The notes beneath the pieces were generated by a model that was not told the origin of the DNA, made no database searches, and was given only the letters and a program-made list of their open reading frames with translations. A program made the position numbers and the translations under genes. Shown here one piece after another: positions 4,854 through 54,353 of a stretch of 64,000 nt of DNA. Each line of letters starts with the position of its first letter. The first letter of the stretch is position 1. This stretch comes from Octopus sinensis (Eukaryota), in assembly GCF_006345805.1 (NCBI RefSeq), contig NC_043024.1, positions 14,384,001 to 14,448,000 on the forward strand, read 5' to 3'.

Positions 4854-4895
4854 CATCACCTACAGCACTTCCATACTCTGCATCTATACCGACAG
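4854..4895 (+). CDS. Microexon 1 (42 nt, phase 1-1) of mucin-like S/T/P stalk: (A)SPTALPYSASIPT
   Basis: tttcAG|CATCACC...CCGACAG|GTcagt; homologous to 16 other copies; first residue in brackets assumes a G from the preceding exon. Confidence 0.85.
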
Positions 4896-5183
4896 GTCAG
4901 TGAATATATTTATGTAATATAAATTTATGTTTATTTTGTCAATCAAGATATATCATCATCATCATTTAGTGTCTGTTTTCCATGAAGGCCTGTGTTAGAC
5001 AATTTGACTGAAACTGGTAAGCTGGGGAGGTGCAGCAATTTCCAAATGAATTTTGGCATTGTTGCTATGACTGGATGTCCTTCCTAATGCCCCCTCTCCA
5101 AGAGTATAATGGGTGTCTTTTACATGCCATTGGCATGGATGATTTCACTTGGCCTGACAAGTGTTCTCAGGGATGGCATATAG

Positions 5184-5538
5184 CCGGGTTCAGTCCCACT
5201 GCGTGGCACCTTGGGCAATTGTCTTCTGCCATAGCCTCGAGCTGACCAAAGTCTTGTGAGTGGATTTGGTAGACGGAAACTGAAAGAAGCCCGTCGTATA
5301 TATGTATATATATGTGTATTTGTGCATGTATGTTTGTGTGTCTGTGTTTGTCCCATCCAACATCGCTTGACAACCGATGCTGGTGTGTTTATGTCCCCGT
5401 CACTAAGCGGTTCAGGAAAAGAGACCGATAGAATAAGTACTGGGCTTACAAAGAATAAGTCCCGGGGTCGAGTTGCTCGATTAAAAGCGGTGCTCCAGCA
5501 TGGCCGCAGTCAAATGACTGAAACAAGTAAAAGAGAAA
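5184..5538 (+). mobile_element. SINE family A, 5'-truncated
   Basis: Homology to family. Confidence 0.85.
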
Positions 5539-5751
5539 GAGAAACAAATAGCCAAAGATCTTGGTCACTTGTCATTACCTTTAGGGTCAACGATCATGCC
5601 TTACCACCTCCCCCCATGTCTTCCTGCATTGACCTCTTGCGCAAGTTCACTCCGCATATAGAAATCCACACTTCTTTACACAGTTATCCTTATTCGTATG
5701 CATCACAGGACCATAGCACCACAGCTGCCTCTGTTACACATCACATCCAAC

Positions 5752-6167
5752 GGTGGCGAGCTGGCAGAATCGTTAGCATGCCAGGTGAAATGTGTAGCCG
5801 TATTCCGTCTGCCGTTTACGTTCTGGGTTCAAATTCCGCCGAGGGCCACTTTGCCTTTCATCCTTTCGGGGTTGATAAATTAAGTACCAGTGACACACTG
5901 CGGTCGATGTAATCGACTTAATCCGTTTGTCTGTCCTTGTTTGTCCCCTCTGTGTTTAGCCCCTTGTGGGTAGTAAAGAAATAGGTATTTTGTCTGCTGT
6001 TACGTTCTGAGTTCAAATTCTGCTAAGGTCCACTTTGCCTTTCATCCTTTTGGGGTCGATAAATTAAGTAACAGTTACACAGTGGGGTCGATGTAATCGA
6101 CTTAATCCGTTTGTCTGTCCTTGTTTGTCCTCTCTGTGTTTAGCCCCTTGTGGGTAGTAAAGAAATA
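5752..6167 (+). mobile_element. SINE family B (Meta-domain-like gcctttcatcctttcggggtcgataaa...agtacc), dimeric body
   Basis: One head plus two bodies within a 16-bp TSD acacatcacatccaac (5736-5751, 6169-6184). Confidence 0.85.
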
Positions 6168-6545
6168 TACACATCACATCCAACGTCTCTTATGTCAAAC
6201 TTTTCTCTCAAGATGCTTACGCACCGTTCTACATGCACAATGACGTTACACATCCAGCAAAGAATACTAGCTTCATTTCTTTCAAGTCTACACATACCCT
6301 CAGTGGTAACAGCCCTTGTTTCACTATTGTGTAGCACATGCACTGCCCTGTAGCATAGCTATGTGCGTCTAGGCATCATGCAGTTCACCTTTCACTCTGA
6401 AGAAGAGGCTCTTTGTTGCGAGCAGAGGTAAGCGCTAGCTGGACTCTGCCCAGCCTATTCTTATTCTCCCAGTTATGCTCTTAATGCATCCACGTCCATT
6501 ACTAACTTGGTCACCTAGATAATGGAAGCTATCTACTACATCTAG

Positions 6546-8178
6546 GTGGTGAGCTGGCAGAAACGTTAGCACGTCGGGCGAAATGCGTCGCTGTATTTCG
6601 TCTGCTGTTACGTTCTGAGTTCAAATTCTGCCGAGGTCGACTTTGCCTTTCATCCTTTCGGGGTCGATAAATTAAGTACCAGTTACGGACTGGGGTCGAT
6701 ATAATCGACTTAATCCGTTTGTCTGTCCTTGTTTGTCCCCTCTGTGTTTAGCCCCTTGTGGGTAGTAAAGAAATAGGTACTTCGCCTGTCTGAGTTCAAA
6801 TTCTGCCGAGGTCGACTTTGCCTTTCATCCTTTCGGGGTCGATAAATTAAGTACCAGTTACGGACTGGGGTCGATATAATCGACTTAATCCGTTTGTCTG
6901 TCCTTGTTTGTCCCCTCTGTGTTTAGCCCCTTGTGGGTAGTAAAGAAATAGGTACTTCGCCTGTCTGAGTTCAAATTCTGCCGAGGTCGACTTTGCCTTT
7001 CATCCTTTCGGGGTCGATAAATTAAGTACCAGTTACGGACTGGGGTCGATATAATCGACTTAATCCGTTTGTCTGTCCTTGTTTGTCCCCTCTGTGTTTA
7101 GCCCCTTGTGTGGGTAGTAAAGAAATAGGTACTTCGCCTGTCTGAGTTCAAATTCTGCCGAGGTCGACTTTGCCTTTCATCCTTCGGGGTCGATAAATTA
7201 AGTACCAGTTACGGACTGGGGTCGATATAATCGACTTAATCCGTTTGTCTGTCCTTGTTTGTCCCCTCTGTGTTTAGCCCCTTGTGGGTAGTAAAGAAAT
7301 AGGTACTTCGCCTGTCTGAGTTCAAATTCTGCCGAGGTCGACTTTGCCTTTCATCCTTTCGGGGTCGATAAATTAAGTACCAGTTACGCACTGGGGTCGA
7401 TATAATCGACTTAATCAGTTTGTCTGTCCTTGTTTGTCCCCTCTGTGTTTAGCCCCTTGTGGGTAGTAAAGAAATAGGTACTTCGCCTGTCTGAGTTCAA
7501 ATTCTGCCGAGGTCGACTTTGCCTTTCATCCTTTTGGGGTCGAAAATTAAGTACCAGTTACGGACTGGGGTCGATATAATCGACTTAATCCGTTTGTCTG
7601 TCCTTGTTTGTCCCCTCTGTGTTTAGCCCCTTGTGGGTAGTAAAGAAATAGGTACTTCGCCTGTCTGAGTTCAAATTCTGCCGAGGTCGACTTTGCCTTT
7701 CATCCTTTCGGGGTCGATAAATTAAGTACCAGTTACGGACTGGGGTCGATATAATCGACTTAATCCGTTTGTCTGTCCTTGTTTGTCCCCTCTGTGTTTA
7801 GCCCCTTGTGGGTAGTAGTAAAGAAATAGGTACTTCGCCTGTCTGAGTTCAAATTCTGCCGAGGTCGACTTTGCCTTTCATCCTTTCGGGGTCGATAAAT
7901 TAAGTACCAGTTACGCACTGGGGTCGATATAATCGACTTAATCAGTTTGTCTGTCCTTGTTTGTCCCCTCTGTGTTTAGCCCCTTGTGGGTAGTAAAGAA
8001 ATAGGTACTTCGCCTGTCTGAGTTCAAATTCTGCCGAGGTCGACTTTGCCTTTCATCCTTTCGGGGTCGATAAATTAAGTACCAGTTACGCACTGGGGTC
8101 GATGTAATCGACTTAATCCGTTTGTCTGTCCTTGTTTGTCCCCTCTGTGTTTAGCCCCTTGTGGGTAGTAAAGAAATA
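6546..8178 (+). repeat. SINE family B concatemer: one head plus nine ~175-bp bodies
   Basis: Eight repeats of the junction aaataggtacttcgcctgtctgagttc; single 16-bp TSD tatctactacatctag (6530-6545, 8179-8194). Confidence 0.92.
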
Positions 8179-8459
8179 TATCTACTACATCTAGCTTACC
8201 CCACTGGCAGTTGATGGGATATATTTTCTGTACATTTTCACTGTTTACTGTATCTATGTACCCACAGATATCATACAGTCACCCTTTCACTCGAGGGAGA
8301 GGGAGAGGTTTTGTTGCCTGGAGAGGCAAGAGCCCTCTGAACTTTGGCCAGCCTATTCTTATTCTCGCTCTTACACTTTCATTGTATCCATGGTCACCTG
8401 GATAACAGTAACTATCTATTACCTCTAGCTTGCAACAGTGTCAGCTCATACTCTCTCTT

Positions 8460-8862
8460 ACTCTATCTTTTACTCTTTTACTTGTTTCAGTCATTTGACT
8501 GCGGCCATGCTGGAGCACCACCTTTAGTCAAGCAAATCAACCCTGGGACTTATTCTTTGGAAGCCCAGTACTTATTCTATCGGTCTCTTTTGCTGAACCG
8601 CTAAGTGACGGGGACGTAAACACACCAGCATCAGTTGTCAAGCAATGCTAGGGGGACAAACACAGACACACACACGCATACATATATATATACATATATA
8701 CGACGGGCTTCTTTCAGTTTCTGTCTACCAAATCCACTTACAAGGCTTTGGTTGGCCCGGAGCTATAGCTGAAGACACTTGCACAAGAATGCCACGCAGT
8801 GGGACTGAACCTGGAACCATGTGGCTGGTAAGCAAACTACTTACCACACAGCCACTCCTGCG
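8460..8862 (-). mobile_element. SINE family A
   Basis: Homology to family. Confidence 0.85.
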
Positions 8863-9202
8863 CACTGTCTTGTGCACTGTCTTGTAGTATGGTTGTTGGA
8901 ACACAGGCATTATACTGTCTACCTTTCACTCTGCGGGAGAGGTTCTTTGTTGCCAGCAGAGGTAAGAGCTCTCAGAAAATAACCCAGCCTATTCTTATAC
9001 ACCTCCTCTCTAACTCATGACAGCATGGAAAGTGGGCATTAAATGAAGATGATGATGATGATATATAAATATATGTTCATGGGTATATATATATATATAT
9101 AACGGGAAGCTTTATGAAAATAAACAAAAGACGAAGGCAGGTGGAGTACACACAAACAATTGTATTAGTATGGCACTCAGGAATATAAATAAAATGAAAC
9201 AA

Positions 9203-9241
9203 GTCTTTTACGTTTCGAGCCTACGCTCTTCGACAGAAAGA
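9203..9241 (-). ncRNA. Minimal type-I hammerhead-like motif in a ~200-bp repeat (other copies 15301-15337 +, 16620-16658 -, 42400-42438 +, 47852-47889 +, 51419-51456 +, 53158-53196 +)
   Basis: TCTTT-CTGTCGA-A-GAGC gtag GCTC-GAAAC-GTA-AAAGA; stems I and II pair; core position 6 is non-canonical. Confidence 0.5.
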
Positions 9242-10131
9242 TACACAGAAAAGAAACACGGAGAGAAACAAGGAGAGAAAAAAAATGCGTGCAGAAGCTA
9301 GCGATTCAACATGATATATATATATATATATATATTATATAATTAGGGCTTAGTAAAATAAATTACTTTGCCACATACTGAACTTAGTAGAAATAGCAGC
9401 CAAAAAAAATTTTCTTAGCATTTCTACTACTTAAAGAAAATTTCTCTCAGATAATGCTTACTCCAGACAGCCCACGAAGGTTTGGAGGTAAATACAGAAA
9501 AATATCACAAGTACATAGATCGTTTGAGTACGTCAACGTTTCAAGATTAGCCAAATAAAATCAGCATTTCTATCGTCAGCTCAAAATTTCTTAATTGGAT
9601 TTGGAAACACTAAAAAGAAGGAACTTTACCTATCAGCGAACTTATCGCTTCAGATGAACCACTCCGACTAACAGTGTCAACAAATTCAAAATGCGCAGGC
9701 GTAAATTTCTTCAATCCCCTTCCACCCACGTGGTCTATCTAGCAAACATTATATTTTAACCGCGAGAACCGAGGCAGTATGACCGAGAGAAATGAATTAT
9801 AATATCAACAATTGAGGGTTGATATATATCAATTGTTGATATATATATATATATATATTTATATTTGTATGCATAGACATAGAAGTATGTATGTAAAATG
9901 ACAATATAAGACAATATTAGACTTTCGTGAGCAACAAAAGCCTAAAATATTTTAGCCAGAAAATCTTGAATGGAAGCTATTTTAAAAGGCAAATTCTATG
10001 CCATGCCATTACTTTGAAATTTCTACAAGTGAGAAATGTTTGAGATTTCATGCAAAAGAGTCAAGAAAGGGGAGATGTGCTTAGATTGTGTATCTGTGTG
10101 TATAAAATGATTTCTCTTCAATATAATATAT

Positions 10132-10355
10132 ATTGCAGTGTGGAAGGTGTTTGTAAGCCATTTAAGAAACACACAAAAGCCGTTCGATTCACTTCAACAT
10201 TTAAGTTTAATTTGTCAAAATATTTTCGTCGCTGAAATCCACGACCTGTTCACTGACAAAAATCCGTGCTGCATCTGAGAAAGTAACAGTTAGTTCGTCA
10301 TATATATGTACGTATATATTCTTAAATGGCTTATAAACACCTTCCATGCTGCAAT
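10132..10355. mobile_element. MITE-like element with ~37-bp inverted repeats
   Basis: attgcagtgtggaaggtgtttgtaagccatttaagaa / ttcttaaatggcttataaacaccttccatgctgcaat. Confidence 0.6.
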
Positions 10356-10418
10356 TGTTTTCGTTCCAGCACACGATCTCAGATCAAATCACTTGCTATG
10401 TGAGTACATCTCCGTAAA

Positions 10419-10821
10419 TCTTTATATATAAAAGTGAAGTTGTGTGTCTGTCTCCTACGATTTAGATTCCTAACTACTCCCACATTTTGCGGAGCAGTTT
10501 AACCAAAAGTGGGTATCATATAGTCGTGATTCATATCGAGCCCTTCTGGGTATTAGCACGCGTCTATGATGAGTCTACGATTTAAAAAAAAAATTTACCA
10601 TCATCATTTTTTTCCATTTTAATGCATTTTTTCGCTATTATATAAGGGAAGTAACTCTCTAAAAATGTCTACGATGAGTCAACGATATTTTTAAAAAATT
10701 ACCATCATTTTTTTTTTCATTTTTAATGCATTTTTTTGCTATTTTTTGGCTATAACTCTCTAAAAATGCTTATATAGTTATTTCCCTTACAAACCTGAGC
10801 AACGCCGGGCGATACTGCTAG
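10419..10821 (+). mobile_element. Non-autonomous Helitron, same family
   Basis: TCtttatatataaaagtg...gcaacgccgggcgatactgCTAG. Confidence 0.8.
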
Positions 10822-10859
10822 TATATATATATTACAATTTCTCTTTTCTGAAATTTCAG

Positions 10860-10901
10860 GATCTCCAACAACATTTGCTTACTCTGCATCAATACCAACA
10901 G
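10860..10901 (+). CDS. Microexon 2 (42 nt): (G)SPTTFAYSASIPT
   Basis: tttcAG|GATCTCC...CCAACAG|GTtagt. Confidence 0.8.
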
Positions 10902-11053
10902 GTTAGTGAGTATATTTATGTAATATAAACTTGTGTTTATTTTGTAAATCAAGCTATATCATAATTGTGATCATCATCATGACCATCATCATTATTTAGT
11001 GACTGCTTTCCATGCTGACATGGGTTAGGTCACCCGGGGCAGATTTTTTTAAA

Positions 11054-11283
11054 GGCGGTGAGCTGGCAGAAACGTTAGCACGCCGGGCGAAATGCTTAGC
11101 AGTATTTCGTCTGCGTTACATTGTGTGTTCAAATTCCGCCGAGGTCGACTTTGCCTTTCATCCTTTCGGGGTCGATAAATTAAGTACCAGTTACGCACTG
11201 GGGTCAATGTAATCGACTTAATACCTATGTCTGTCCTTGTTTGTCCCCTCTGTGTTTAGCCCCTTGTGGGTAATAAAGAAATA
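11054..11283 (+). mobile_element. SINE family B monomer
   Basis: Homology to family. Confidence 0.85.
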
Positions 11284-11436
11284 GATATTTTAACTGAAAC
11301 TGGTAAGCCGGAGAGGTGCAGTAAGTTCCAGTTGGATTTGGCATGGTTTCTATTGCTGGATGCCCTTCCTAATGCCAGCCACTACAATTTCACTTTCCTT
11401 GACGCGTCCTCTCAAAGATGCCATATCACCAAAGGT

Positions 11437-11856
11437 GGAAGCACTCCGTCGGTTACGACGATGAGGGTTCCGGTTGTTCCGATAACCAGAACAGCCTGCT
11501 CATGAAATTAACGTGTAAGTGGCTGAGCACTCCACAGACACGTGTACCCTTAACGTAGTTCTCGGGGATATTCAGCGTGACACAGAGAGTGACAAGGCCG
11601 GACCTTTGAAATACAGGTACAACAGAAACAGGAAGTAAGAGTGAGAGAAAGTTGTGGTGAAAGAGTACAGCAGGGATCACCACCATCCCCTGCTGGAGCC
11701 TCGTGGAGCTTTAGGTGTTTTCAGTCAATAAACACTCACAACGCCCGGTCTGGGAATCGAAAACGCCAACCCAAGACCACGAGTCCGCTGCCCTAACCAC
11801 TGGGCCATTGCACCTCCACTGGGCCATTGCGCCTCCACTGGGCCATTGCGCCTCCA
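11437..11856 (-). mobile_element. SINE family C (tRNA-like head GTGGAGGCGCAATGGCCCAGTGGTTAG), head triplicated as a 20-bp repeat
   Basis: Homology to 21210-21593; ccactgggccattgc(g/a)cct x3. Confidence 0.8.
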
Positions 11857-12579
11857 AAGGTATCGGTCACTTGTCATTGCCTCTGTGAAACCCAATGTTC
11901 AACAATCATGCTTCCGCACCTCCTCCCATGTCTTCCTGGATCTAGCTCTTCCACAGTTTCCCCACCCCCCCAGGGTTAGAGATCCACAATTCTTGACACA
12001 GCTGTCCTCATCCGTATGCATCACAGGACCAGACCAGCACAGTCGTCTCTGTTACACACCACATACAATGTCCCTTATGCCCAACTCTTGTCTCAAGATG
12101 TTTACACCCTATTGTACATGCACACTGACATTGCATATCCAGCAAAGCATACAAGCTTAATTTCATTCATGCCTACACCTGTGTCCTCACTGGTCTCACT
12201 CCATGTTTCACTGCCGTGTAGCATGTATTATGCCCTGTGGCTTGGCCGTATGCATGCAGGTATCATGCAGTCTGCCTTTCATTCTGAAGGTTTGTTGCCA
12301 ACAGAGGCTAGATCTCTTTCAACTTTGCCCAGCCTATTTTTATTCTTGCAAAAGTTTATGCTCTGAGAGTATCCATCTCCACTACTAAATTGGTCCCCTA
12401 GATATCAGAATCTATCTACTACCTCTAGCTTACCCAACTGGCAGTTGAGGGAAGACAATCGGAGGTTTATGCATATCAACAGGTTTAATAAATATATTCA
12501 ACTTACACCACTTCTCTAACCCTTGTGAGTGTAGAAAGTGGACATTAAATGAAGATGGTGTATATATATATATATATAT

Positions 12580-12988
12580 ACTCTTTTACTTGTTTCAGTC
12601 ATTTGACTGTGGTCATGCTGGAGCACCACCTTTAGTCAAGCAAATCGATCCCAGGACTTTACTTATTCTATTGTTCTCTTTTGCCGAACAGTTAAGTTAT
12701 GGGGACCTAAACACACCAGCATCAGTTGTCAAGCAATGTTGGGGGGGGGGCAATACAGACACACAAACATACACACACACACACACACACATATATATAT
12801 GTCAGGCTTCTTTCAGTTTCCGTCTACCAAATCCACTCACAAGGCTTTGATTAGCCCAAGGCTATAGTAGAAGACACTTGCCCAAGGTGCCACACAATGG
12901 GACTGAACCCAGAACAATGTGGTTCGTAAGCAAGCTACTTACCACACACCCACTCCTATATATATATATATATATATACATCATCTTC

Positions 12989-13022
<34 letters not shown>

Positions 13023-14488: not shown

Positions 14489-14654
14489 AGGCGCAGGAGT
14501 GGCTGTGTGGTAAGTAGCTTGCTTACCAACCACATGGTTCCGAGTTCAGTCCCACTGCGTGGCATCTTGGGCAAGTGTCTTCTACTATAGCCCCGGGCCG
14601 ACCAATGCCATGTGAGTGGATTTGGTAGACGGAAACTGAAAGAAGCCTGTCGTA

Positions 14655-14710
<56 letters not shown>

Positions 14711-17977: not shown

Positions 17978-18010
17978 CGTCAACACCATACTCTGCATCA
18001 ATACCAACAG
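17978..18010 (+). CDS. Microexon 3 (33 nt, in-frame 9-nt shorter): (A)STPYSASIPT
   Basis: tttcAG|CGTCAAC...CCAACAG|GTcagt; length still a multiple of 3. Confidence 0.8.
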
Positions 18011-19886: not shown

Positions 19887-19928
19887 TATCGTCTGCAGTA
19901 CCTCCATATTCAGCATCTATACCGACAG
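19887..19928 (+). CDS. Microexon 4 (42 nt): (V)SSAVPPYSASIPT
   Basis: tttcAG|TATCGTC...CCGACAG|GTcagt. Confidence 0.85.
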
Positions 19929-22213: not shown

Positions 22214-22255
22214 CATCATCTGCAGTACCTCCATACTCTGCATCTATACCAACAG
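22214..22255 (+). CDS. Microexon 5 (42 nt): (A)SSAVPPYSASIPT
   Basis: tttcAG|CATCATC...CCAACAG|GTcagt. Confidence 0.85.
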
Positions 22256-22764: not shown

Positions 22765-23790
22765 TCAGCATAGAGGAGCTCCCAGGGGCATCCTGTCTTG
22801 AATTCCTCTGTTATTGCCTGGATGACTATGATGAATAAAAGGGGCTGAGGACTAATTTTTGGTTGACCCCTACCCTTACCTGGAATTCTTCACTGTACTT
22901 GTTGCCAACCCTCACCTTACTGACAGCATCCCTGTACATGGCTTGCTCAGCTCTTACTAACCATTAATTGACCACCAGATAAGGCGATCGGGCGACCCCG
23001 TCAAAGGCTTTCTTGATGTCAATGAAATCCAGACACAGAGGTTTATCCTTGGCTAGGTATTTCTCCTGTAGCTGTCTTGCTAGAAATATAGCAACAGTGG
23101 TACTTTTCCCTGGTATGAACCCAAACTTCATCTCGTCTAGACTGACTCTCTCCCTAATTAGTTGGGCTATGACCTTCTCCGTGACCTTCATTACCTGAGC
23201 CAACAACTTGATACCTCTGTAATTACTTGTATCTAAAGCATCACCTTTACCTTTGTAGCAGTTGACTATGATGCTGCTACACCAGTCATTGGGTATGACT
23301 CCTTCATGTGTCACCTGGTTAACTATATGGGTGACCAGGCTACAGCCGACACCACCAGATATTTTGAGCATCTCTGAGGTGATTCCTGATGGACCAGGGG
23401 CTTTCCCTATCTTCATACCTTTAATTGCTTTATTTACCAAAGTAGCTGGCCCCTCTGTTGGGTTGGCATTTGGCAGATTTTGTTTCTCCCATTCATTCTC
23501 TTTATTTAGCAACCTTTCATAGTGGCATCTCCAAACCTCTCTCTTTGCAGCCTCATTTAACACAAGAGAGCCATTATCCATGCAGACACATTTCTCTCCT
23601 ACGACATCCCGATTCTCTCTCACACACTGTCTTGCAACACAAAATACCTCAAGTCATTGGTCCTCACGGTGCAGAACATTGGCAAATTTTTCCTTATCTA
23701 CTTCCCCTCTGGCTAAATAAATCTGTCTCCTACCTTCCCTTCTGGCATTCTGAAACAATTCCCTGCTACCACTGTTATCCCACGCTTAAT
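22765..23790 (-). mobile_element. RTE-clade LINE reverse transcriptase fragment
   Basis: ORF 22964-23623: KAPGPSGITSEMLK...YKGKGDALDTSNYRGIKLL...QEKYLAKDKPL...DIKKAFD. Confidence 0.9.
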
Positions 23791-25428: not shown

Positions 25429-25470
25429 TATCGTCTGCAGTACCTCCATATTCAGCATCTATACCGACAG
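25429..25470 (+). CDS. Microexon 6 (42 nt): (V)SSAVPPYSASIPT
   Basis: tttcAG|TATCGTC...CCGACAG|GTcagt. Confidence 0.85.
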
Positions 25471-27806: not shown

Positions 27807-27848
27807 CATCATCTACAGTACCTCCATACTCAGCATCTATACCAACAG
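27807..27848 (+). CDS. Microexon 7 (42 nt): (A)SSTVPPYSASIPT
   Basis: tttcAG|CATCATC...CCAACAG|GTcagt. Confidence 0.85.
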
Positions 27849-29237: not shown

Positions 29238-29279
29238 CATCATCTACAGTACCTCCATACTCTGCATCTATACCAACAG
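29238..29279 (+). CDS. Microexon 8 (42 nt): (A)SSTVPPYSASIPT
   Basis: tttcAG|CATCATC...CCAACAG|GTcagt. Confidence 0.85.
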
Positions 29280-29302: not shown

Positions 29303-30580
29303 TCAGGTCATCCCATAAGGTCTGTCTGAATTTTGAATAAAGAAAACAAGTGATCAAATGTTATATTTAATTGAAATTTAATCATCAATGTACTTTCCTT
29401 GATTATCTATGACTTCCTTCCATCTATTTACAAGCTTTTTAATCCCATCAATGTAAATCTCTTTTGATTTCAAAGCAAAGAACTCTGAAATGTCAGTTTC
29501 GACCTCCTCCTGGCTTGCGAAAGTTATGTCCCCCAAATGATTCCGTAAACTGCGAAACAAATGGTAGTCTGAAGGAGCAAGGTCGGGAGAATAAGGTGGA
29601 TGAGGAAGTTTTTCCTAACCAAGCTCTTCGATCTTCTCTGATGTGATCTTTGCTGTGTGGGGTCGTGCATTGTCCTGATGAAACATCACTCCTTTTCGAT
29701 TCACTAAAGGGGGTCTGGTTTTCTTCAAAACCTGGTTCAAATGCTCTAATTGCTGACAGTAGACTTAAGTATTCATTGTTGCATTAGGTGGTAACAATTC
29801 AAAGTGAATTACTCCTCTGCAATCCCACCAGATACAGAGAAGAAACTTTTTTCCATGAAATTCCCTTCTCGGTTGTGGTTGAGCTTTTTCCCTTTTACCA
29901 AGCCACTGTTTACGACATTTAACATTTCAATAGAAGATCTATTTTTCGTCATAAGTCAATCCACAAAGAGTGAAATGAGTTCACGAGAATGGAGAGAAGA
30001 GCAGATGTCAACTTGGGATTTGCAGTTGCTTTCAGAGAATTCACGAGGCACACATTTTCCAAGTTTAGGAACCTTTCCAAGTTGTTGAAGATGACGATGA
30101 ACAGTTGTTTGTTTTGAACTAAGCTTTATTGCCAATTTTTCAACTGATAATGCAGGATTTTCTTCAAGTAATGCCTCAAGGAGCTTATCATCAAACTTGA
30201 TTAGATGTCCTGTTCGATCTTCATCTTCAAGGCTGAAATCTCCACTTCTGAATTTTGCAAACCACCTTCTGCAAGTTCTTTCATTCAAACATTCTTTCCC
30301 ATAAACTGAGTGCATGTTTCGAGTTGCTTCGGCTGCAGAGTTTCCATTTTTGTACTCATAAAGCATTATGTGCCTCAAATGCTCTTTGGATACTTCCATG
30401 TTAGAAAGGGTTTTAATCAAAGGAATTTTAATTCTATTATTCTGTAAAATAATATTTAATTAGTTTAAATGTACACAAATGCATAAAAATAATTATAATT
30501 CTATTACACATTCTAAAATACTATTAAATTTCATTAAATTATAAACGGTAAAATCAGACAGAACTTATGGGATGACCTGA
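29303..30580 (-). mobile_element. Near full-length mariner transposon with disrupted transposase
   Basis: ~30-bp TIRs tcaggtcatcccataag, TA TSD; ORF pieces 29956-30420 (HTH region, RHIMLYEYKNG...RRWFAKFRSGDFSLED) and PHPPYSPDLAPSDYHLFRSL...KKLVNRWKEVIDNQGKYID. Confidence 0.95.
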
Positions 30581-31368: not shown

Positions 31369-31410
31369 TATCGTCTGCAGTACCTCCATATTCAGCATCT
31401 ATACCAACAG
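31369..31410 (+). CDS. Microexon 9 (42 nt): (V)SSAVPPYSASIPT
   Basis: tttcAG|TATCGTC...CCAACAG|GTcagt. Confidence 0.85.
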
Positions 31411-34612: not shown

Positions 34613-34654
34613 CATCATCTACAGTACCTCCATACTCTGGATCTATACCAACAG
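34613..34654 (+). CDS. Microexon 10 (42 nt): (A)SSTVPPYSGSIPT
   Basis: tttcAG|CATCATC...CCAACAG|GTcagt. Confidence 0.85.
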
Positions 34655-37291: not shown

Positions 37292-37333
37292 CATCATCTG
37301 CAGTACCTCCATACTCTGCATCTATACCAACAG
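37292..37333 (+). CDS. Microexon 11 (42 nt): (A)SSAVPPYSASIPT
   Basis: tttcAG|CATCATC...CCAACAG|GTcagt. Confidence 0.85.
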
Positions 37334-38470: not shown

Positions 38471-38586
38471 TTTTCCATATTATATGTATGTATGTATATA
38501 TATATGTATGTATATATATATGTATGTATGTATATATATATACATATATATTACTATATATATATATATATATTATATATACATAC

Positions 38587-38617
<31 letters not shown>

Positions 38618-38719
38618 CATACATATATTATATACATATATATATATATATACATACATATATATATATACATATATATATATCATATATATATATATAT
38701 ACATACATATATATAATAC

Positions 38720-38761
<42 letters not shown>

Positions 38762-38786
38762 ATATATAACATATATATATATATAC

Positions 38787-38835
<49 letters not shown>
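38470..38835. repeat. Long imperfect (TA)n/(TACA)n microsatellite (one of dozens in the window)
   Basis: Composition. Confidence 0.95.
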
Positions 38836-38839
<4 letters not shown>

Positions 38840-39141
38840 ATATACACTCACTCATAAAACCAGAAGTACAATATAAGGAGATAGTGGCATATTTCACTGT
38901 TTAGCCGTTTATGATGAATGAAATCCTTAAAAAATTAGCCAGATAATATTGCATGTAAGATATTTTAAAAGGCAAATCCTATCATGTGAATAGTTTTAAA
39001 TTAACACATGTGGGAAAAGTTAGAGATTTCATGCAAAAGAGTCAAGAAAGGGGAAATGTGCTTAGATTGTGAGTCTTTGTGTATAAAATGATTTCTATTC
39101 AATAAAATATATATTACAATTTCTGTATCCTAAAATTTCAG

Positions 39142-39183
39142 TATCGTCTGCAGTACCTCCATATTCAGCATCTATACCAACAG
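39142..39183 (+). CDS. Microexon 12 (42 nt): (V)SSAVPPYSASIPT
   Basis: tttcAG|TATCGTC...CCAACAG|GTcagt. Confidence 0.85.
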
Positions 39184-43181: not shown

Positions 43182-43223
43182 CATCGTCTGCAGTACCTCC
43201 ATACTCTGTATCTACACCGACAG
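43182..43223 (+). CDS. Microexon 13 (42 nt): (A)SSAVPPYSVSTPT
   Basis: tttcAG|CATCGTC...CCGACAG|GTcagt. Confidence 0.85.
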
Positions 43224-45215: not shown

Positions 45216-45437
45216 TATTTCTTTACTACCCACAAGGGGCTAAACACAGAGAGGGCAAACAGGCACAGACAAACAGATTAAGTCGATTATATCGACCAAA
45301 GTGCGTAACTGGTACGTATTTAATCGACCCCGAAAGGATGAAAGGCAAAGTCGACCTTGGCGGAATTTGAACTTAGAACGTAAAGACGGACGAAATACGG
45401 CTACGCATTTCGCCCGGCGTGCTAACGATTCTGCCAG
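45216..45437 (-). mobile_element. SINE family B nested in an RTE-tail element
   Basis: Homology; flanking ccagacc(c/t)ggtcg duplication. Confidence 0.8.
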
Positions 45438-45893: not shown

Positions 45894-46205
45894 GTGGAGG
45901 CGCATGGCCCAGTGGTTAGGGCAGCGGACTCGCGGTTGTGGGATCGCGGTTTCGATTCCCAGACAAGGCGTTGTGAGTGTTTATTGAGCGAAAACACCTA
46001 AAGATCCACGAGACTCCGACAGGGGGTAGTGGCGATCCCTGCTGTACTCTTTCACCACAACTTTCTCTCACTCTTTCTTCTGTTGGCCTGCTTGCTTGGC
46101 CAGCGGGGTGGCGTTATTCGAAGGCTAAAACAATGCGAAGTGCATTGTGACCAGTGATGTGTAGCAACATCTGATAACCTGGTTAGTTACGGTGATCATG
46201 GTGAT
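45894..46205 (+). mobile_element. SINE family C
   Basis: Homology to family. Confidence 0.8.
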
Positions 46206-46214
46206 ATATATTAT

Positions 46215-46612
46215 AGGTGCAGAAGTGGCTGTGTGGTAAGTAGCTTGCTTATCAACCACATGGTCCCGGGTTCAGTCCCACTGCATGGCACCTTGGGCAA
46301 GTGTATTCTACTATAGCCTCAAGCCTTGTGTGTGGATTTGGTAGACGGAAACTGGAAGAAACCCATCGTATATATGTATATATATATATATTTGTGTGTG
46401 TGTTTGTCTGTCTGTGTTTGTCCCCCCAACATCGTTTGACAACCGATGCTGGTGTGTTTACGTCCCTGTAACTTAGCAGTTCGGCAAAAGAGACCAATCG
46501 AATAAGTACTAGGCTTACAAGGAATAAGTCCTGGGGTCGATTTCCTCGACTAAAGGTGGTGCTCCAGCATGGCTGCAGTCAAATGACTGAAACAAGTAAA
46601 AGAGTAAAAGAG
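46215..46612 (+). mobile_element. SINE family A
   Basis: Homology to family. Confidence 0.85.
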
Positions 46613-46968
46613 TATATGTATACATGCACTCACACACTCAAACAAACACATACGCACGTGCGTGCATAAACACAGAAGTATATATATAGAACAACAATAT
46701 AAAGAAGTAGTATCATATTTCACTCTTTAGCCCTTCAAGATGAGCAAAAACCTAAAAAATTAATCAGAAAATCTTAAAAGCAAGATATTTTAAAAGACAA
46801 ATACTATGTCGTGTCAATACTTTTAAATCCCCACAACTGAGAAAAGTTAGAGATTTCATGCAAAAGAATTCGGAAAAGGCAGATGTGCTTGGATTATTTG
46901 TCTGTTTGTATTCAATGCTTTCTCTTCAATATAATATGTATTACAATTTCTATATTTGGAAATTTCAG

Positions 46969-47010
46969 CATTGTCTACAGTACCTCCATACTCTGGATCT
47001 ATACCAACAG
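46969..47010 (+). CDS. Microexon 14 (42 nt): (A)LSTVPPYSGSIPT
   Basis: tttcAG|CATTGTC...CCAACAG|GTcagt. Confidence 0.85.
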
Positions 47011-47437
47011 GTCAGTGATTATATATTTACTCTTTTACTTGTTTCAGTCATTTGACTGTGGCCATGCTGATGCACCGCCATTAGTTGAGCAAATCGACCC
47101 GGACTTCTCCTTACTTCTTATAATAAGCTCGAAACCTAAAAGACCTTTCCATTTTTCCTGATCGTCAAACTAATACACTTGGTTGTTGTTTCTCTTTGTT
47201 TTTCCATAAATTTGAACAAAACCCTAAAACAATTACCCAGAAAATCATGAATACAAGAGATTTAAAAGGGCAAATACTATGTCATGTCAATACTCTTTAA
47301 TTACCACAAGTGAGAAAAGCTAGAGATTTCATACAAAAGAGTACAGAAAGGGGAGATGTCCTCAGATTGTTTGTTCGTATACAATGATTTTTCTTGAATA
47401 TGATATATATTACAATTTCTATATCCTAATATTTCAG

Positions 47438-47479
47438 CATCATCTACAGTACCTCCATACTCTGGATCTATACCGACAG
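47438..47479 (+). CDS. Microexon 15 (42 nt): (A)SSTVPPYSGSIPT
   Basis: tttcAG|CATCATC...CCGACAG|GTcagt. Confidence 0.85.
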
Positions 47480-48384
47480 GTCAGTGAATATATATTTATG
47501 TAATATAAACTCATGTACAATTTGTAAATCAAGATAATATAAACTTATGTTTATTTTGTAAATATCATCATCATCATCGTCTGCTTTCCATGATGGGATG
47601 GGCTAGACATTTTAACTAAAACTGGTTAGCCAGAGAGTTGCGACAAGTTCCAGTCAGATTTGGCATGGTTTCTACAACTGGATGCTCTTCCTAATGCCGA
47701 CCACCCCAAGAGTATAATGGGTGCTTTTTACACCATGAATTATCTCCCATTCCTTTAACCTCTCCTTATTATCAGCTCCCTTTCGTTCAACCTTTTTTAC
47801 CCTAACATTCGCCATGCTTTTTCATTCTCTCTCTATTTACTTCCTCTAATTCCTTTGTGACGAAGAGCATAAGCTCGAAACTTAAAAGACCTTTCCAGTT
47901 TTCCTGATCGTCAAACTAATACACTTGATTATTGTTTCGCTTTGTTTTCCCATAAATTTGAACTATATATATGTGTGTATGTATGACGATTGGAAGGGCA
48001 TATACCTGTAAAAATCCTGCGAAAATAGTTAGTTAAACGATGATGATGATGAAATATATATATATATATATATATCAATAATATATAAATATATATATAT
48101 ATATATATAATAATAATAATGATAATATAAATAATTTATGAATATATGCATATATATTTATATATATCATAATATAAATAACATATAAATATATGCATAT
48201 ACAATGATTATATACATATATGTACATACCTACATATATATGTATACATACATGCATATATGTGTACAGGACATCAAAAAAACGTTGAACACAATGAGAA
48301 ACGAAAACACAAAAACAAAAACATAGAAATGAGACCTACAACCTGAAGAATATCCCCCTTCTTCAGTTGTCCTCAACCACTCCA

Positions 48385-48865
48385 CAGGTTTATTCTTATT
48401 TTTATAAGAATGCCATATTAGTATGGCGATAACTATTATTTTCCGGGAACGCTGCCGTTGTTCTCTTTTAGAGAGACTTAGTAATTTTAATATTTCTATT
48501 ATTGAAAACAAGTGGATGTATTCCACCGAAGCTAGGTAAATAAAACCATCGAACAGAGATTGTCGGAAGCGACACCTACTGGCTGGCTACGCTGCATTGA
48601 AAAGGGGCAATACCCCGAAACGCGTCTGTAGCTGCCGGTCAAGTAGTGTGGAGCGACTGACCTCCCTTGTTCGAAGGTTATATGGATACAGTTTGTGTAT
48701 CAAATAGCTAACTTAAGGCAATGGCCTCATGGAGCTAATAAGCGGACAGCTTTATTCTTATTTTTATAAGAATGCCATATTAGTATGGCGATAACTATTA
48801 TTTTCCAGGAACGCTGCCGTTGTTCTCTTTTAGAGAAACTTAGTAATTTTAATATTTCTATTATA
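48385..48865 (+). mobile_element. Penelope-like terminal repeat in partial tandem, with degenerate minimal hammerhead at 48591-48632; relative at 50370-50705
   Basis: Direct partial repeat (48385-48503 vs 48750-48865); GCTGCA-TTGAAAA-GGGG caata CCCC-GAAAC-GC-GTC-TGTAGC. Confidence 0.6.
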
Positions 48866-49388
48866 TATATATATATATATATAGAAAATAGTAAAAAGTG
48901 AAAAAACTACAGAAGGCTTGTTTTAAAAGGTTAAAAAATATATATTTGAGTCAATATGTCTGAAGAATGTTATAAATCTTTTTCATACAATGACATAGTT
49001 TTTGAAGAAATGACCGGTTTCGCGTTCAGCTTTTCAAATTTCTTACATTGTTATGTTTACGTTGAGAAGAGATATCATTATGTTTATATATATATAAAAA
49101 CACAGAAGTACATATGTAAAACAACAATATAAGGAGATAATATCTTATTTCACTCTTTTGCCCTTCACAAGGAACAAAGCCCCCCAAAAATTACCCAAAA
49201 CTCTTGAAAGCAAGATATTTTAAAAGGCAAATACAATGTCATGTCAATACTTTTACATTGCCATAAGTGCGTAAAGTTAGAGATTTCATGCAAAAGGGTA
49301 GAGAAAGGGGCTTAGATTGTATGTCTGTGTGTATACAATTTCTCGTTAATATAATACATATTACAATTTCTACATTCTGAAATTTCAG

Positions 49389-49430
49389 CATCACCTCCAG
49401 CACCTCCATACTCTGTATCTATACCGACAG
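49389..49430 (+). CDS. Microexon 16 (42 nt): (A)SPPAPPYSVSIPT
   Basis: tttcAG|CATCACC...CCGACAG|GTctgt (weaker donor). Confidence 0.75.
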
Positions 49431-50320
49431 GTCTGTGAATATATTTATATAATATAAACTTATGTTTATTTTGTAAATTAAGATATATCATCATCCTCAT
49501 CTTCATCATCATCATCATCATTTAGTGTCTCTTTTCCATGCTGGCATGGGTTAGAGAGTTTAACTGAAACTGGTAAGCCAGAGAGGTGCCGCAAGTTCCC
49601 GTCTGATTTGGCATGGTGTCTACAGCTGGATGGTCTTCCTAACATCAACCCCTCCAAGAGCGTAATGGGTGCTTTTTACATGCCTCATGCGTGGGTCCTT
49701 TTATGCACCTGAAGTATGGGTGCCAGTCATGTGACTCTAGCATCGGTCATTACTACGATTTCACTTGGCTTGACGAGTCTTATTAACTTTTATATCCTGC
49801 CACAGATTGGTATAAATAAATATGTGTAGTGGAGGTTTAATCAATGTTCACACGAGTACTTTGCAAGACTACCAGGAATGGGTGGGGGTTCCTCCTCGCT
49901 GGCTTGCTGCCTTCTTCCCCTCCTCCTCTTCCTGCCCACCCTGTCCACTCTGTTGATTCCCCCATCTTGCACCCTGGCCCCTTGCTTCCATCCCTCTCAG
50001 TTTCCGATGCTACAACTGTCAGAGACACGGTCTCCTCTGGAGCCTTCTTCGGTTCCTCTACAGGGTGTAAAGCACCTGGCTCTCATGTGTCACAACTGTC
50101 CAAACTTACAGCACCTCAGCGTGCACTAAGGATACTGCTTGGTGCATGGTTATTGAGAAAGACTGTGCTCAAGGCTGTGATGTAATGTCAAACTCATTTG
50201 GAAAGTATGAATAAAAATTGAATGGAAATGAGCAATGAAGTGAGATGCTCTGTCTATTAGTTGACAGTTGTTTTATAAGCTGTGTTAGTTATATAAGTAG
50301 CACTACATCATGCATCACAA

Positions 50321-50358
<38 letters not shown>

Positions 50359-50706
50359 CTATTTTTGAAAACCAGTGGATGTATTCCACTGAATTTAGGT
50401 AAATAATCCTTCAAACAGACGGTCAGTAGCGACGCCTGCTGGGTTCGGCTACTCTGCATTGATAAAGGGCAAATACTCAGAAACATGTCTGCAGATGCCT
50501 GACCAGCAAGGGGAAGCGGCTGACCTCCCCTGTTTGAAGATTATAATGGACACAGGTTCGTGTGTCACATAGCAAGCTAGAGGCGATGACCTCTTGGAGC
50601 TAATCATCGGCAGCTTTCGTCCTATATTTATGGACTACCATATTAGTTTGGCGATAACTATTAATATCCTGTACCACTGCTGTAGTCTCCTTTAGAGAGA
50701 CTCAGA

Positions 50707-50752
<46 letters not shown>

Positions 50753-51186
50753 TATATATATATATATACCTTCAGCAACAACACACCCTATAAGCTGAGT
50801 GACTACTACTAAATTCAGGCCATGACAGATGTTGCTAAAGCTGAGGATTTTGAACTTAGAGAGAATGATAATGTTTACATATCACCTGAGGAAACACATC
50901 TAGTTCTCATAATGCAGGGAAGCACTTACATAATCAACTATCTGAACGCCTTGAGAGCTATGTTTCGTGGAAACAATTGTAGTGATTAAAAAATACATGT
51001 CCAACCATACTCCTTGTTGACCCAAATTTTTTCAGCTATGTATTCGCACACGACAGATGCCCAAACGCAAACCTGGAGGTACACATAATACTACCACTGG
51101 ATAGCACAGGGTAAATCTGGAGGTGGATGAGCTTTATACTGTGCTCTACTACATTCTTAACAGAATATACCATAACTATATATATG

Positions 51187-51231
<45 letters not shown>

Positions 51232-51559
51232 ACCCCATACATACGCCTGTCCAGACCTATCCTAGGGTCATTCAACCCTATTATCTCCCCTTATTTCGCT
51301 CTCGCGTCTCATGTTTGATCTTTGACCTCTGGCCGAAATCAGATCGCCATGTTGATTCGTTAGTTACTGCACGCATTTTTTTCTCTCCTTCTTTCTGTGT
51401 TTTTTTTCTCTCTGTGTATCTTTCTGTTGAAGAGCGTAGGCTCGAAACGTTAAAGACTTGTTTTATTTATATTTCCTGAGCGCCATACTAATACAATTGT
51501 TTGTTTGTTTTCCACCTGCCTTCGTCTTTTGTCTATTTTCATAAAGCTTCCCGTTATAG

Positions 51560-51595
<36 letters not shown>

Positions 51596-53489
51596 GTATA
51601 TATGTATATATATATATATATATATGTATAGGGTGGCGAATACTCGTTATAAATATCATCACGAGTGGCCTAGCATGTATAAAAAGTCAATAGACAACAT
51701 ATTCGTATTTCAAAATAGAAAATTACCCTTTAACAGGCAATTTTACATGCTAGAAATAGCAGCCAACACGGCTAAAAAACCACAATTTTATAGCAAATTT
51801 CGAAGTAAATGAAAAATAAAAACTTTTACCTTGTTATATAGTAATCCTTGTTTAAGTAATCTGAAACCATGGTATAACTGTTATATAACAAGGTAAAGGT
51901 TTTTATTTTTCATTTACTTCGAAATTTGCTATAAAATTGTGTTTTTTTTAGCCGTGTTGGCTGCTATTTCTAGCATGTAAAATTGCCTGTTAAAGGGTAA
52001 TTTTCTATTTTGAAATATGCATAAAGCTAAATAAGGGTAGAAATTGATATTAATCAATTAAAACCTGTGGCTTAGCATATTTTAAAAAGTCCAAAGATTA
52101 AAAATTGTTTTACATACAAAATTTAGAGGACTGACCACTAAAAGTGGACAGCCTATATGCTAAACATAGATGTCAAATCGCCATTTATCATGAAGAATGT
52201 GTTCTCAGGAAAAATCTCAGCAAAAAACCAAAGTGTAAAAATAAGCAAGACACATGAAAATATACGAAATATAAAACGATTACCTATGTACCAATTGGTT
52301 TCACTTGTTAATATTTACATATATGAACACGCAAACATCTACAAGATCATCAGCATAGTCTATCGTTTACAAAACACAATTTCCAGAACTAGATACAGAA
52401 CACTAAACCGAAATCCAGCATGTATAAAGTTCTACAAATTATATTTAGGTGTATCTTTCAAAATATCAAAATAAGCAACAAGGATATCCAGAAGTAATGC
52501 AGTACAATCATTTCATGCAACTCCATTTAATTGAAAACTGCAATCATTACATCATTTTAAAATGAAGAGCAATATATATATATATATAATATCTGTAAAA
52601 TATGTGACAATTATTCGGTTGCCATAATAAACCTCCGAGTTTCGGATGTCGGGGCGGAAACCTGCACCGGCATCTCTTCAGTTATCGAGGCAATCAAGGT
52701 ATGCTATCGGAGTTTTATTATGGCAACCAAATAATTGCCACATATTTCACAGATAAAATCCTCTATTTACATAATATCGAGGTCTCTTTCAGTCTTTTGT
52801 TGTTTTACCATTACTATTTATATATATATTCATATATATATATATATATATATATATTTTATATAAACTCACCACCGTGGAGATGGAGGCTGGATTTACC
52901 AAATGTTTACTTGCTTCCATTACTGGTTGCATATTTTTGTGAACTAACATCTGCCTACATTATGAAGTACCTCTGAGCCCCCCGAAACAGCTGTTGGACT
53001 TGCCACACCATACCTTCTTCCCTTTATTTTTCTGTCCCTTCGCATTCTCTGTAAGCATGCTCTATTAATATATAAATGTCTGTATATTTATACTGGAATA
53101 TTCAACATCTGGGAATTTTCACTATATTTACATTTCTCTTCTTGTTTTTTCTGTGTCCCTTTCTGTAGAAGAGCGTAGGCTCAAAATGTAAAAGACTTTT
53201 TCTATTCCTAAGCGTTATACAAATACATCTGCTTGTTTTCTACACCACCTGTCTTAGTCTCCTGATTTTTTTCGTAAACGTTCCCTATATATATATATCA
53301 TCATCGTTTAACGTCCGTTTTCCGCGCTAGCACGGGTTGGACGGTTTGACCGGGGTCTGGGAAGCCAGGGGCTGCTCCAGGATCGAGTCTGATCTGGCAG
53401 AGTTTCTACTGCTGGATGCCCTTCCTAACGCCAAATATATATAAATATATAAATATAAATATATATATAAATATATAAATATATTTCGT

Positions 53490-53698
53490 TACTACACACA
53501 GAGGACAAACAAGGACAGGCAAACGGATTAAGTCAGTTACATCGAGCCCAGTACATAACTGGTACTTAATTTATCGACCCCGAAAGGATGAACGGCAAAG
53601 TCAACCTCGGCGGAATTTGAACTTAGAATGTAGCGGCAGACGAAATAAGGCTACGCATTTCGCCCGGCGTGCTAATGTTTCTGCCAGCTCGCCGCCTT
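53490..53698 (-). mobile_element. SINE family B, partial
   Basis: Homology to family. Confidence 0.8.
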
Positions 53699-54311
53699 TA
53701 TATATATATATTGCATTTCTAATTCCATGTGTTTATTTGCATCATTACCTCCACATATATCTGCTCACCTGTATTCATTACACAACTAATATTTACCCTG
53801 AATACTTGGTCCTAAATAAAGGTTTCAGAGTACAACTTCAAATCATGTGAACACTATGTTTTCTATACTGAAAATCTTTGAATCTCATGCTTCAACTCTG
53901 TCCCTCTCTCTTTCTCTCTCTCTCACTCTCTCACTCTCTCTCTCTCGCCCCCCTCGCTCTCTCCTCACTCTCTCTCTCTCGCCCCCTCGCTCTCTCCTCT
54001 CTCTCCTCTCTCTCTCTCTCTATATATATATATGTGTGTGTGTGTGTCTGTGTGTTTATACATCACACTTAAGCCATTTCATTTGAAATATAAACATAAA
54101 ATTTACCCAGAAAATCTTGAAACCAAGTTATTTAAAAAGGCAGATTGTGCCATGTCAATACCACTTTTAAATTACCACAAGTGAGAAAAGTTCGAGATTT
54201 TATTCACATGAGTAGAAAATGGGAGATGGGCTTAGATTGTGTGTGTCTGTGTGTATATTGTGATTTGTCTTCAATATAACATAGTAGAATTTCTATATTC
54301 TAAAATTTCAG

Positions 54312-54353
54312 CCTCATCTACAGCAAGACTATATTCTGGGTCCACACAAAGAG
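54312..54353 (+). CDS. Microexon 17 (42 nt, most divergent): (A)SSTARLYSGSTQR
   Basis: tttcAG|CCTCATC...CAAAGAG|GTttgt; same upstream intron cassette as the other units. Confidence 0.7.

Follow-up and report, generated by a model that had tools for sequence, protein, structure and literature searches.

The 64,000-nt stretch of the Octopus sinensis genome analysed here (C28:14384001-14448000, G+C 38%; hereafter the window, in whose positions unit coordinates are given) contains an array of 17 short exons that leads, in frame, into the first of a series of repeated protein modules. When one unit with its flanks was used as a BLASTN query, exactly 17 copies were recovered in the window, all on the + strand; 16 of the 17 are 42 nt long and the remaining one measures 33 nt. 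Each has TTTCAG as its acceptor and a donor of the form GT(C/T)(A/T)GT, and is in phase 1 at both ends (17/17 for each of these features), and the introns between units range from 427 to 7076 nt. Concatenated, the units give 705 nt, or 235 codons, which in phase 1 read as repeats of (A/V/G)SSxVPPYSASIPT. At the junction with the next exon, which begins at 55466, the final G of unit 17 and the following TT form a Val codon and the reading continues in frame as V-E-K-C-R-L-M-D-G. A preliminary description of this stretch had claimed 17 copies of a 42-nt unit (one of 33 nt), tttcAG and GT splice sites with phase 1 at both ends, a spacing of 0.4-7 kb among transposable elements (TEs), and 235 codons of S/T/P-rich repeats that join exon 55466 in frame. 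The copy number and lengths proved exact by BLASTN and boundary extraction, the sites and phase hold throughout, and the introns do contain debris of long interspersed nuclear elements (LINEs), mariner elements and short interspersed nuclear elements (SINEs); the repeats are indeed rich in S/T/P (S+T 39%, P 20% over 235 aa), and the in-frame join is confirmed both by the spliced sequence and by an ortholog protein. Openness by itself carries no evidence, as the concatenate can be read without a stop in any of the three frames; what sets the frame of the array is the downstream domain exon together with the ortholog protein.

We consider it likely (probability about 0.8) that the 17 units are real internal coding microexons in the 5′ repeat region of the O. 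sinensis ortholog of O. bimaculoides LOC106881592, a gene built almost wholly of phase 1-1 modules. The closest known counterpart, the O. bimaculoides product XP_052833088.1 (P0011), is an ‘uncharacterized protein’ of 1260 aa that starts with MPS, followed by 13 14-aa repeats (ASSTVPSYSASIPT, ASSPPPPYSASIPT and others) joined directly to VENCRFMDG.... Thus, the PYSASIPT repeats join the VENC... exon in the same frame in both species; in addition, the repeat families and domains follow one another in the same order, and corresponding exons are 91-100% identical. Specifically, the 13 repeats and a VENC domain of P0011 are followed by ISPSSTPYLGSTPT and five copies of VSSVSTPYLESTAT, a spacer and repeats that correspond to ten O. 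sinensis copies of ASSVSIPYSESTVT at 14467852-14484753, and then by a divergent domain (O. sinensis 14495242/14499892). The second part of the protein consists of a GPSV/EVTG linker (GPSV.../EVTGPIRPHT, corresponding to 52 O. sinensis units at 14509561-14652070), another VENC domain (14660438, 14666432), TSSTAVPYSSSIQT (100% identical to the O. sinensis unit at 14736690), 20-aa repeats that correspond to 60-nt exons, and a C-terminal domain that is 91% identical to O. sinensis 14746989-14747258. In O. sinensis, the counterpart of the ‘MPS’ start is the ...FMPT end of a diverged unit of 39 nt, 5.5 kb upstream of the window (C28:14378487-14378525), so the array starts before 4854. This unit has its own TTTTCAG acceptor, which marks it as an internal exon; the true 5′ end is therefore not among the exons located.

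The gene spans at least 369 kb in O. sinensis, from C28:14378487 to at least 14747258, and contains about 100 symmetric microexons of 21-60 nt in at least five sequence families: xSSxVPPYSASIPT (family A, the array in the window), APSSPTPYLGxSPT (the inter-domain family), ASSVSIPYSESTVT, GPSVSSIAVTPS/EVTGTIRPHT, and the 20-aa repeats. A conservative count gives 18 family A units, 5 inter-domain, 11 family B and 52 family C, together with 2 singletons, 5 of family D and 4 of the 60-nt type. The rule of one small exon per repeat in a common symmetric phase therefore extends from the 17 units to about 80 more, 21-60 nt in length. The microexons alternate with about ten modules of 133 aa that are bounded by cysteines; each consists of a 263-nt and a 136-nt exon (399 nt, phase 1-1, Cys first and last), eight intact copies lie on the array contig, and spacer exons of 36-42 nt separate several of these. 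In the first copy, the exon that begins at 55466 ends at 55728 rather than at an internal GGAATAG/GT site, and it aligns with P0011 and a second O. bimaculoides model, P0002, over 87-88 aa. The preliminary description was thus right about this exon and about the array joining it, but it missed that the exon is the first half of a tandemly repeated two-exon module, and it saw one of at least five microexon families in a locus that holds about 100 such exons over at least 369 kb; likewise, the 17 units that it placed in the window stand, but the array has a further 39-nt unit upstream and belongs to a far larger gene. One unit of a distal cluster (C28:14727673-14727765) carries a 1-nt deletion that removes its GT donor (...ACACAAAAAG/TTTGTG) and is probably a dead pseudo-exon.

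Since all modules of the gene share phase 1-1, duplication, loss or skipping of any one of them leaves the reading frame intact, and the earlier statement that any subset of units can leave without a frameshift follows directly. The two species differ in number: the O. bimaculoides model has 13, 5 and 1 units where the O. sinensis genome has 17-18, 10 and 5, it has three VENC-type or divergent domains plus the C-terminal one where O. sinensis has about ten modules, and its gene occupies 158 kb as opposed to at least 369 kb. The differing unit counts indicate in-frame length change, either by copy number or by skipping in the model. The repeats are also homogenised within each species, to SSPPPPYSASIPT in O. 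bimaculoides and to SS(A/T)VPPYSASIPT in O. sinensis.

Annotation of this locus in other models is fragmentary. The O. sinensis models XP_036370448/9 (LOC118768321; 136/147 aa; C28:14502971-14503003 and 14503974 onward) cover only a fragment of the large gene: their start is a Met within a domain exon, and their last exon is a short alternative terminal one, GLSYCKHMCQV*. Protein-database searches returned no annotated O. sinensis protein that carries the repeat. The protein searches also gave P0002, which falls in the same 90% cluster as P0011, and an O. vulgaris fragment, P0001; the annotated O. vulgaris model is a fragment of 194 aa. The description of the array as hidden therefore holds for O. 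sinensis, with its fragment model, but not for O. bimaculoides, where a standard pipeline recovered the array. We found no paper on these loci or on microexon-encoded mucin-like repeats in cephalopods. Fragments of 136/147 aa in O. sinensis and 194 aa in O. vulgaris, set against a locus of at least 369 kb, make the gene a stress test for annotation.

An alternative is that the units only resemble exons and are carried by transposons or satellites, or that misassembly has inflated their number. In its favour, TEs abound in the introns, a SINE-borne 21-nt pseudo-exon (TCTACTATAG...GTGAGT) yields false positives in a relaxed scan, and the domain modules at 55.1-60.6 kb are duplicates with 95% identity. 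Against this, the array unit (family A) has 23 matches in the 2.72-Gb genome and all lie on the + strand of C28: 17 fall in the window, and the other 6 form a second cluster 340 kb further downstream. Genome-wide matches of the inter-domain family (6) and of family C (31 + 21) likewise all fall at this locus on the + strand. Confinement of the matches to this place and to one strand makes the array unit a feature of one locus. A scan of 264 kb for microexons open in phase 1, in which the acceptor had to be pyrimidine-rich, the GT donor to have G at +5, the length to be a multiple of three and S/T/P/A/G/V to make up at least 70% of the residues, yielded 65 hits on the + strand and a single one on the - strand. 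The units are absent elsewhere in the 2.7-Gb genome, belong to one gene that is collinear with the ortholog protein, and differ from one another by 10-16% with distinct TE insertions between them, which does not fit collapsed or duplicated reads. We therefore reject a TE or satellite origin of the units, given three unit families restricted to one locus and to the + strand; the wider reading that includes an assembly artefact is largely refuted and, in our view, very improbable.

Homology between units runs 0.2-1.5 kb into the introns at 72-90% identity, which indicates that the array grew by duplication of genomic blocks, some of them with two or three exons. We propose that the arrays of the gene would have grown by tandem duplication of 0.5-8-kb blocks with one to three exons each, and that transposons would have filled the introns afterwards. 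Pairwise identity between units is 0.84-0.90 in the exon and 0.875-0.90 in the adjacent flanks (-40 to -1 and +1 to +30), and falls to 0.53-0.72 beyond, so that exon and flanks together form an island of conservation.

Several observations count against the explanation proposed above. Exons in the array show no higher conservation than the adjacent intron flanks, and recurrent variable sites fall at third codon positions in 4 of 11 cases, which is the chance level; with no third-position excess and with exon and flanks equally conserved, the within-array data do not show selection on the peptide. Gene conversion could also mimic the conservation island. At the level of the protein, XP_052833088.1 is itself a computed RefSeq model, and a collection of 5.8 billion proteins, including transcript-derived ones, contained no open reading frame (ORF) with the O. 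sinensis repeat; a search of the same collection with the ortholog as query missed even the ortholog itself and is uninformative. A search for a signal-peptide exon over the 45 kb that precede the first window unit, including 34.5 kb upstream of the 39-nt exon, yielded nothing but microsatellite artefacts. The O. bimaculoides model has no signal peptide either, and by eye it has no hydrophobic stretch long enough for a transmembrane helix. Finally, the 133-aa module has no Pfam match at E up to 10, whether searched as the module or within the whole ortholog, and no PDB sequence match in a profile search, and its AlphaFold models are of low confidence (predicted local distance difference test scores of 45 and 54), so that a fold was not obtained.

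Within the array, constraint is visible on the splicing signals rather than on the peptide. The AG and GT dinucleotides are intact in all 68 cells (17/17 units), at a rate of difference from the majority base of 8% per site per copy across the island (P = 0.004; 8e-4 to 4e-5 at flank-like rates). The sole indel in an exon is the in-frame 9-nt deletion, and the flanks carry many indels. Unlike the within-array data, comparison between diverged families does argue for selection on the peptide: exon identity is 0.62-0.67 versus 0.26-0.58, a background level, in the intron beyond -20/+10, and the 42-nt length, the phase and the motif S-S-x-x-x-P-Y-x-x-S-x-x-T are kept across families, with synonymous changes of Ser and Tyr codons.

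These data also bear on the possibility that the array is partly dead, with some units spliced and the others decaying as duplicate pseudo-exons in long introns. The distal unit that has lost its donor (C28:14727673), the smaller number of units in the O. bimaculoides model than in the O. sinensis genome, and the fact that divergence is highest in units 1, 2 and 17, at the ends of the array, would all fit such a history. However, AG, GT and the full TTTCAG persist in all 17 window units, each of which has an open frame and a length that is a multiple of three, although the sites around them have changed at about 8% per site (P ~0.004 or less), and the donor loss in the distal copy shows that decay does occur, which makes the intactness of the 17 informative. 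We regard a partly dead array as improbable.

If the 17 units are real exons, the way in which they are used can be read in two ways. All 17 (or 18) may always be included, the layout being a by-product of segmental duplication and the variation lying between species or alleles rather than between isoforms; we put this at a little short of even odds. In agreement with constant inclusion, 13 units follow one another uninterrupted in the O. bimaculoides model, the splice sites are uniform and near consensus, with CAG/GTCAGT fitting 8 of 9 U1-pairing positions, and no consensus RNA structure for looping exons out was found. Other observations argue against it. One isoform pair of LOC118768321, X1 and X2, is distinguished by a 33-nt phase 1-1 microexon (14502971-14503003), and the O. 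bimaculoides models P0002 and P0011 are one in-frame 20-aa cassette apart and otherwise identical over 537 aa; both differences come from annotation only and fall only at other microexons of the gene, outside the 17, yet they are two symmetric microexons present in one annotated model and absent from another. In addition, the donors of all 17 units have a pyrimidine at +3 (GTCAGT 14 times; GTTAGT, GTCTGT and GTTTGT once each), as do those of the downstream 42-nt families, whereas the donors of the domain exons are GTAAGT in 16/16 (for example at 55729, 56644, 58558 and 59476); the microexon donors thus deviate from the consensus systematically and across the family. The flanks from -40 to +30 are conserved like the exon, as is common at regulated cassettes, but gene conversion explains this equally well.

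The same features have been taken here as points for the idea of the preliminary description, that the array consists of regulated cassettes whose tissue- or stage-specific skipping tunes the linker in 14-aa steps. The 1-1 symmetry of each module is perfect, cassette events are annotated at other microexons of the gene, and the sub-consensus +3 donors stand beside conserved proximal intron flanks. Moreover, an in-frame YAG (Y, pyrimidine) occurs at nt 10-12 of 15/16 full-length units after a pyrimidine-rich stretch (CATCATCTACAG/TACC; e.g. 29247-29249). Used as an alternative acceptor, this internal CAG could produce a 30-nt exon, VPPYSASIPT, and hence a 4-aa step; the +3 pyrimidine and the internal YAG might thus bear on regulation. 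Symmetry does not discriminate between the two readings, however, because duplication-driven growth also requires it, and the ortholog model without gaps speaks for inclusion. Regulated skipping within the array is possible but, as we judge it, rather unlikely. An adjustable length for the 17 exons is plausible, with indirect support from the differing unit counts and from the whole in-frame cassettes by which annotated models differ elsewhere in the gene: the linker would change in 14-aa steps by evolutionary gain and loss of units and possibly also by exon skipping. Pairing of the conserved flanks in the RNA (TATTACA/TGTAATA) was considered and rejected, as RNAalifold gave no such helix and no covariation.

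Returning to the units as coding microexons, the 235-aa product they predict contains 26.8% S, 11.9% T, 20.4% P and 7% Y, with no acidic or Lys residues. The 17 repeats thus have the composition of mucin-like proline/threonine/serine-rich (PTS) domains (S+T at least about 25%, high Pro, tandem repeats). The product would be an extended, uncharged, mucin-like linker, and its composition and the cysteine-bounded modules suggest that it may be secreted and O-glycosylated. ‘Linker’ fits better than ‘stalk’, given that no signal peptide or transmembrane segment was found and that the region is N-terminal of the domain series. Each unit would be ~3-4 nm long if extended like mucin, and the conserved P-Y core suggests that the repeat is more than inert filler.

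The PTS or variable-number tandem repeats of mucins are normally encoded in one large exon. The octopus array resembles canonical mucin PTS regions in its mucin-like composition and its tandem repeats, but here the repeats are encoded one per exon over 50 kb. In titin, the PEVK region is encoded by many small symmetric exons, each specifying one repeat of a disordered, extensible segment whose length is set by skipping. This is the best functional analogue of an adjustable spacer with one exon per repeat, and in titin the skipping has been demonstrated; titin differs in being intracellular, in its Pro/Glu/Val/Lys rather than Ser/Thr/Pro/Tyr composition, in exons of ~75-90 nt and in compact introns. 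The variable exons of CD44 and CD45 are similar in being symmetric modules that could be skipped.

In DMBT1, each SID lies on its own exon. DMBT1 (salivary agglutinin), with its SRCR-SID organization, resembles the octopus gene in that a repeated globular domain alternates with short Ser/Thr/Pro-rich spacers, and the SIDs find their direct counterpart in the APSSPTPYLGxSPT microexons that lie singly between octopus modules. It differs in that its globular domain is SRCR, whereas the octopus module has no Pfam match and is not SRCR, and in that one spacer lies between domains, compared with octopus runs of 10-50 consecutive spacer exons. In DMBT1, the number of units varies genetically and alters protein size (PMC5435793).

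The octopus gene shares symmetric microexons and long introns with the micro-exon genes (MEGs) of Schistosoma, although we know of no sequence relationship between them. The products of MEGs are small and secreted and lack repeated folded domains; longer terminal exons flank an interior almost entirely of symmetric microexons, which do not derive from a single tandemly copied repeat. The octopus gene, with its span of at least 369 kb, an ortholog of 1260 aa, and interspersed domain exons of 263 and 136 nt, falls outside the MEG definition. The coding sequence of MEGs consists largely of symmetric microexons (3-81 bp) with long introns, and in-frame variation is possible (bioRxiv 10.1101/2023.06.21.545858).

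The octopus gene is a known design, that of DMBT1 spacers and titin PEVK, in a new form, not a new kind of system, and its interest lies in its scale, in its departure from the single-exon habit, and in the problem it poses for splicing and annotation. Mucin-like repeats normally change length only through repeat instability at the DNA level; with one symmetric exon per repeat, segmental duplication or deletion can alter length, and splicing potentially can as well. How the spliceosome joins dozens of near-identical 42-nt exons over multi-kb, TE-laden introns without mis-pairing is a question for which the gene offers a natural system. A bolder and doubtful proposal is that it is an extracellular counterpart of titin PEVK, in which ~100 microexons in arrays of 10-50, combinatorially spliced and gained or lost between individuals, would set the spacing of lectin-like modules in a mucin-like or adhesive protein in increments of 7-20 residues; the P-Y core would be a modification or cross-linking site, and the encoding of the mucin domain would be lineage-specific and an exception to the one-large-exon rule.

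The 133-aa module that these arrays separate is predicted to be beta-rich and has so far been found only in Octopus species and a few further database records; the gene thus defines a lineage-restricted module. Distant relatives (27-40% identity), dozens of them in tandem and spaced ~2-4 kb apart, lie at C9:75.09-75.23 Mb and C2:30.79-30.86 Mb, and judging by these matches the two arrays are probably further giant genes of the same family. Foldseek searches with the low-confidence models gave a best E of 0.09 and template modelling scores of at most 0.41, with retinoschisin in 17th place at a probability of 0.14. A discoidin/F5-8 type C identity, the first candidate for the module, gained no support, the results from Pfam, the PDB profile search, two AlphaFold runs and Foldseek being negative or too weak.

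In the window, two modules lie within a 2.7-kb tandem duplication of 95% identity (55135-57802 versus 57965-60623), and a third copy follows just outside the window (C28:14449590). At the protein level the first three modules share 97% identity, and the module copy number near 55-60 kb may be unstable or mis-assembled. The 2.7-kb duplicate holds the whole two-exon module and an ORF with no Pfam match (56673-57206, 59591-60127), possibly of retroelement origin. The inter-domain microexon that follows is related to the downstream APSSPTPYLGxSPT spacers, with 82% identity to the inter-domain unit over 119 nt. The coordinates of all features are collected in Table 1.

Table 1. Exons, domain modules and repeats in the window (window positions)
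Feature	Position	Strand	Length (nt)	Remarks
Microexon 1	4854..4895	+	42	Phase 1-1; ASPTALPYSASIPT; acceptor TTTCAG, donor GTCAGT
Microexon 2	10860..10901	+	42	GSPTTFAYSASIPT; donor GTTAGT
Microexon 3	17978..18010	+	33	In-frame 9-nt deletion; ASTPYSASIPT
Microexon 4	19887..19928	+	42	VSSAVPPYSASIPT; 1-kb homology block with unit 9, 90%
Microexon 5	22214..22255	+	42	ASSAVPPYSASIPT
Microexon 6	25429..25470	+	42	VSSAVPPYSASIPT
Microexon 7	27807..27848	+	42	ASSTVPPYSASIPT; 1.5-kb homology block with unit 10
Microexon 8	29238..29279	+	42	ASSTVPPYSASIPT
Microexon 9	31369..31410	+	42	VSSAVPPYSASIPT
Microexon 10	34613..34654	+	42	ASSTVPPYSGSIPT
Microexon 11	37292..37333	+	42	ASSAVPPYSASIPT
Microexon 12	39142..39183	+	42	VSSAVPPYSASIPT
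Microexon 13	43182..43223	+	42	ASSAVPPYSVSTPT
Microexon 14	46969..47010	+	42	ALSTVPPYSGSIPT
Microexon 15	47438..47479	+	42	ASSTVPPYSGSIPT
Microexon 16	49389..49430	+	42	ASPPAPPYSVSIPT; donor GTCTGT
Microexon 17	54312..54353	+	42	ASSTARLYSGSTQR; most diverged copy; donor GTTTGT
Domain module copy 1, exon A	55466..55728	+	263	Phase 1 in, 0 out; VEKCRLMDG...EHRNIIW, donor GTAAGT
Domain module copy 1, exon B	56508..56643	+	136	Phase 1 out; GFRATENGTIPQG...IIGCFQTI
Domain module copy 2, exon A	58295..58557	+		Within 2.7-kb tandem duplicate
Domain module copy 2, exon B	59340..59475	+		
Inter-domain microexon	61388..61423	+	36	Phase 1-1; ...TSSPMPTLIPT
175-bp tandem array	6614-8178 (also 5800-6167)			8.9 copies, 98% identity; intron 1
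RVT_1 fragment	22964-23653	-		
Mariner/Mos1-type transposase HTH_48 fragment	29956-30459	-		
RVT_1 fragment	63228-63728	+		After reverse transcriptase-like ORF 62708-63193, itself without Pfam match

Among the transposon remains in the introns, the reverse transcriptase fragment at 22765-23404 is 84% identical, in inverted orientation, to 62867-63523. The local anomaly in G+C and AT-skew is explained by the 175-bp tandem array, whose unit we take to be a SINE-like derivative (...GTTCAAATTC...GGGGTCGATAAATTAAGTACCAG...). A repeat-borne 21-nt pseudo-exon, bounded by TCT(A/G)CTATAG and GTGAGT and encoding A(P/S)GRP(K/M)P, occurs at 14591, 19473, 30963 and 37487 and at many places outside the window, and accounts for false positives in relaxed microexon scans. 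Intron 11 contains an (AT)n microsatellite of ~186 copies (38477-38844), and TG/TA-rich microsatellites elsewhere give rise to spurious ‘YIYIYI/CVCVCV’ ORFs.

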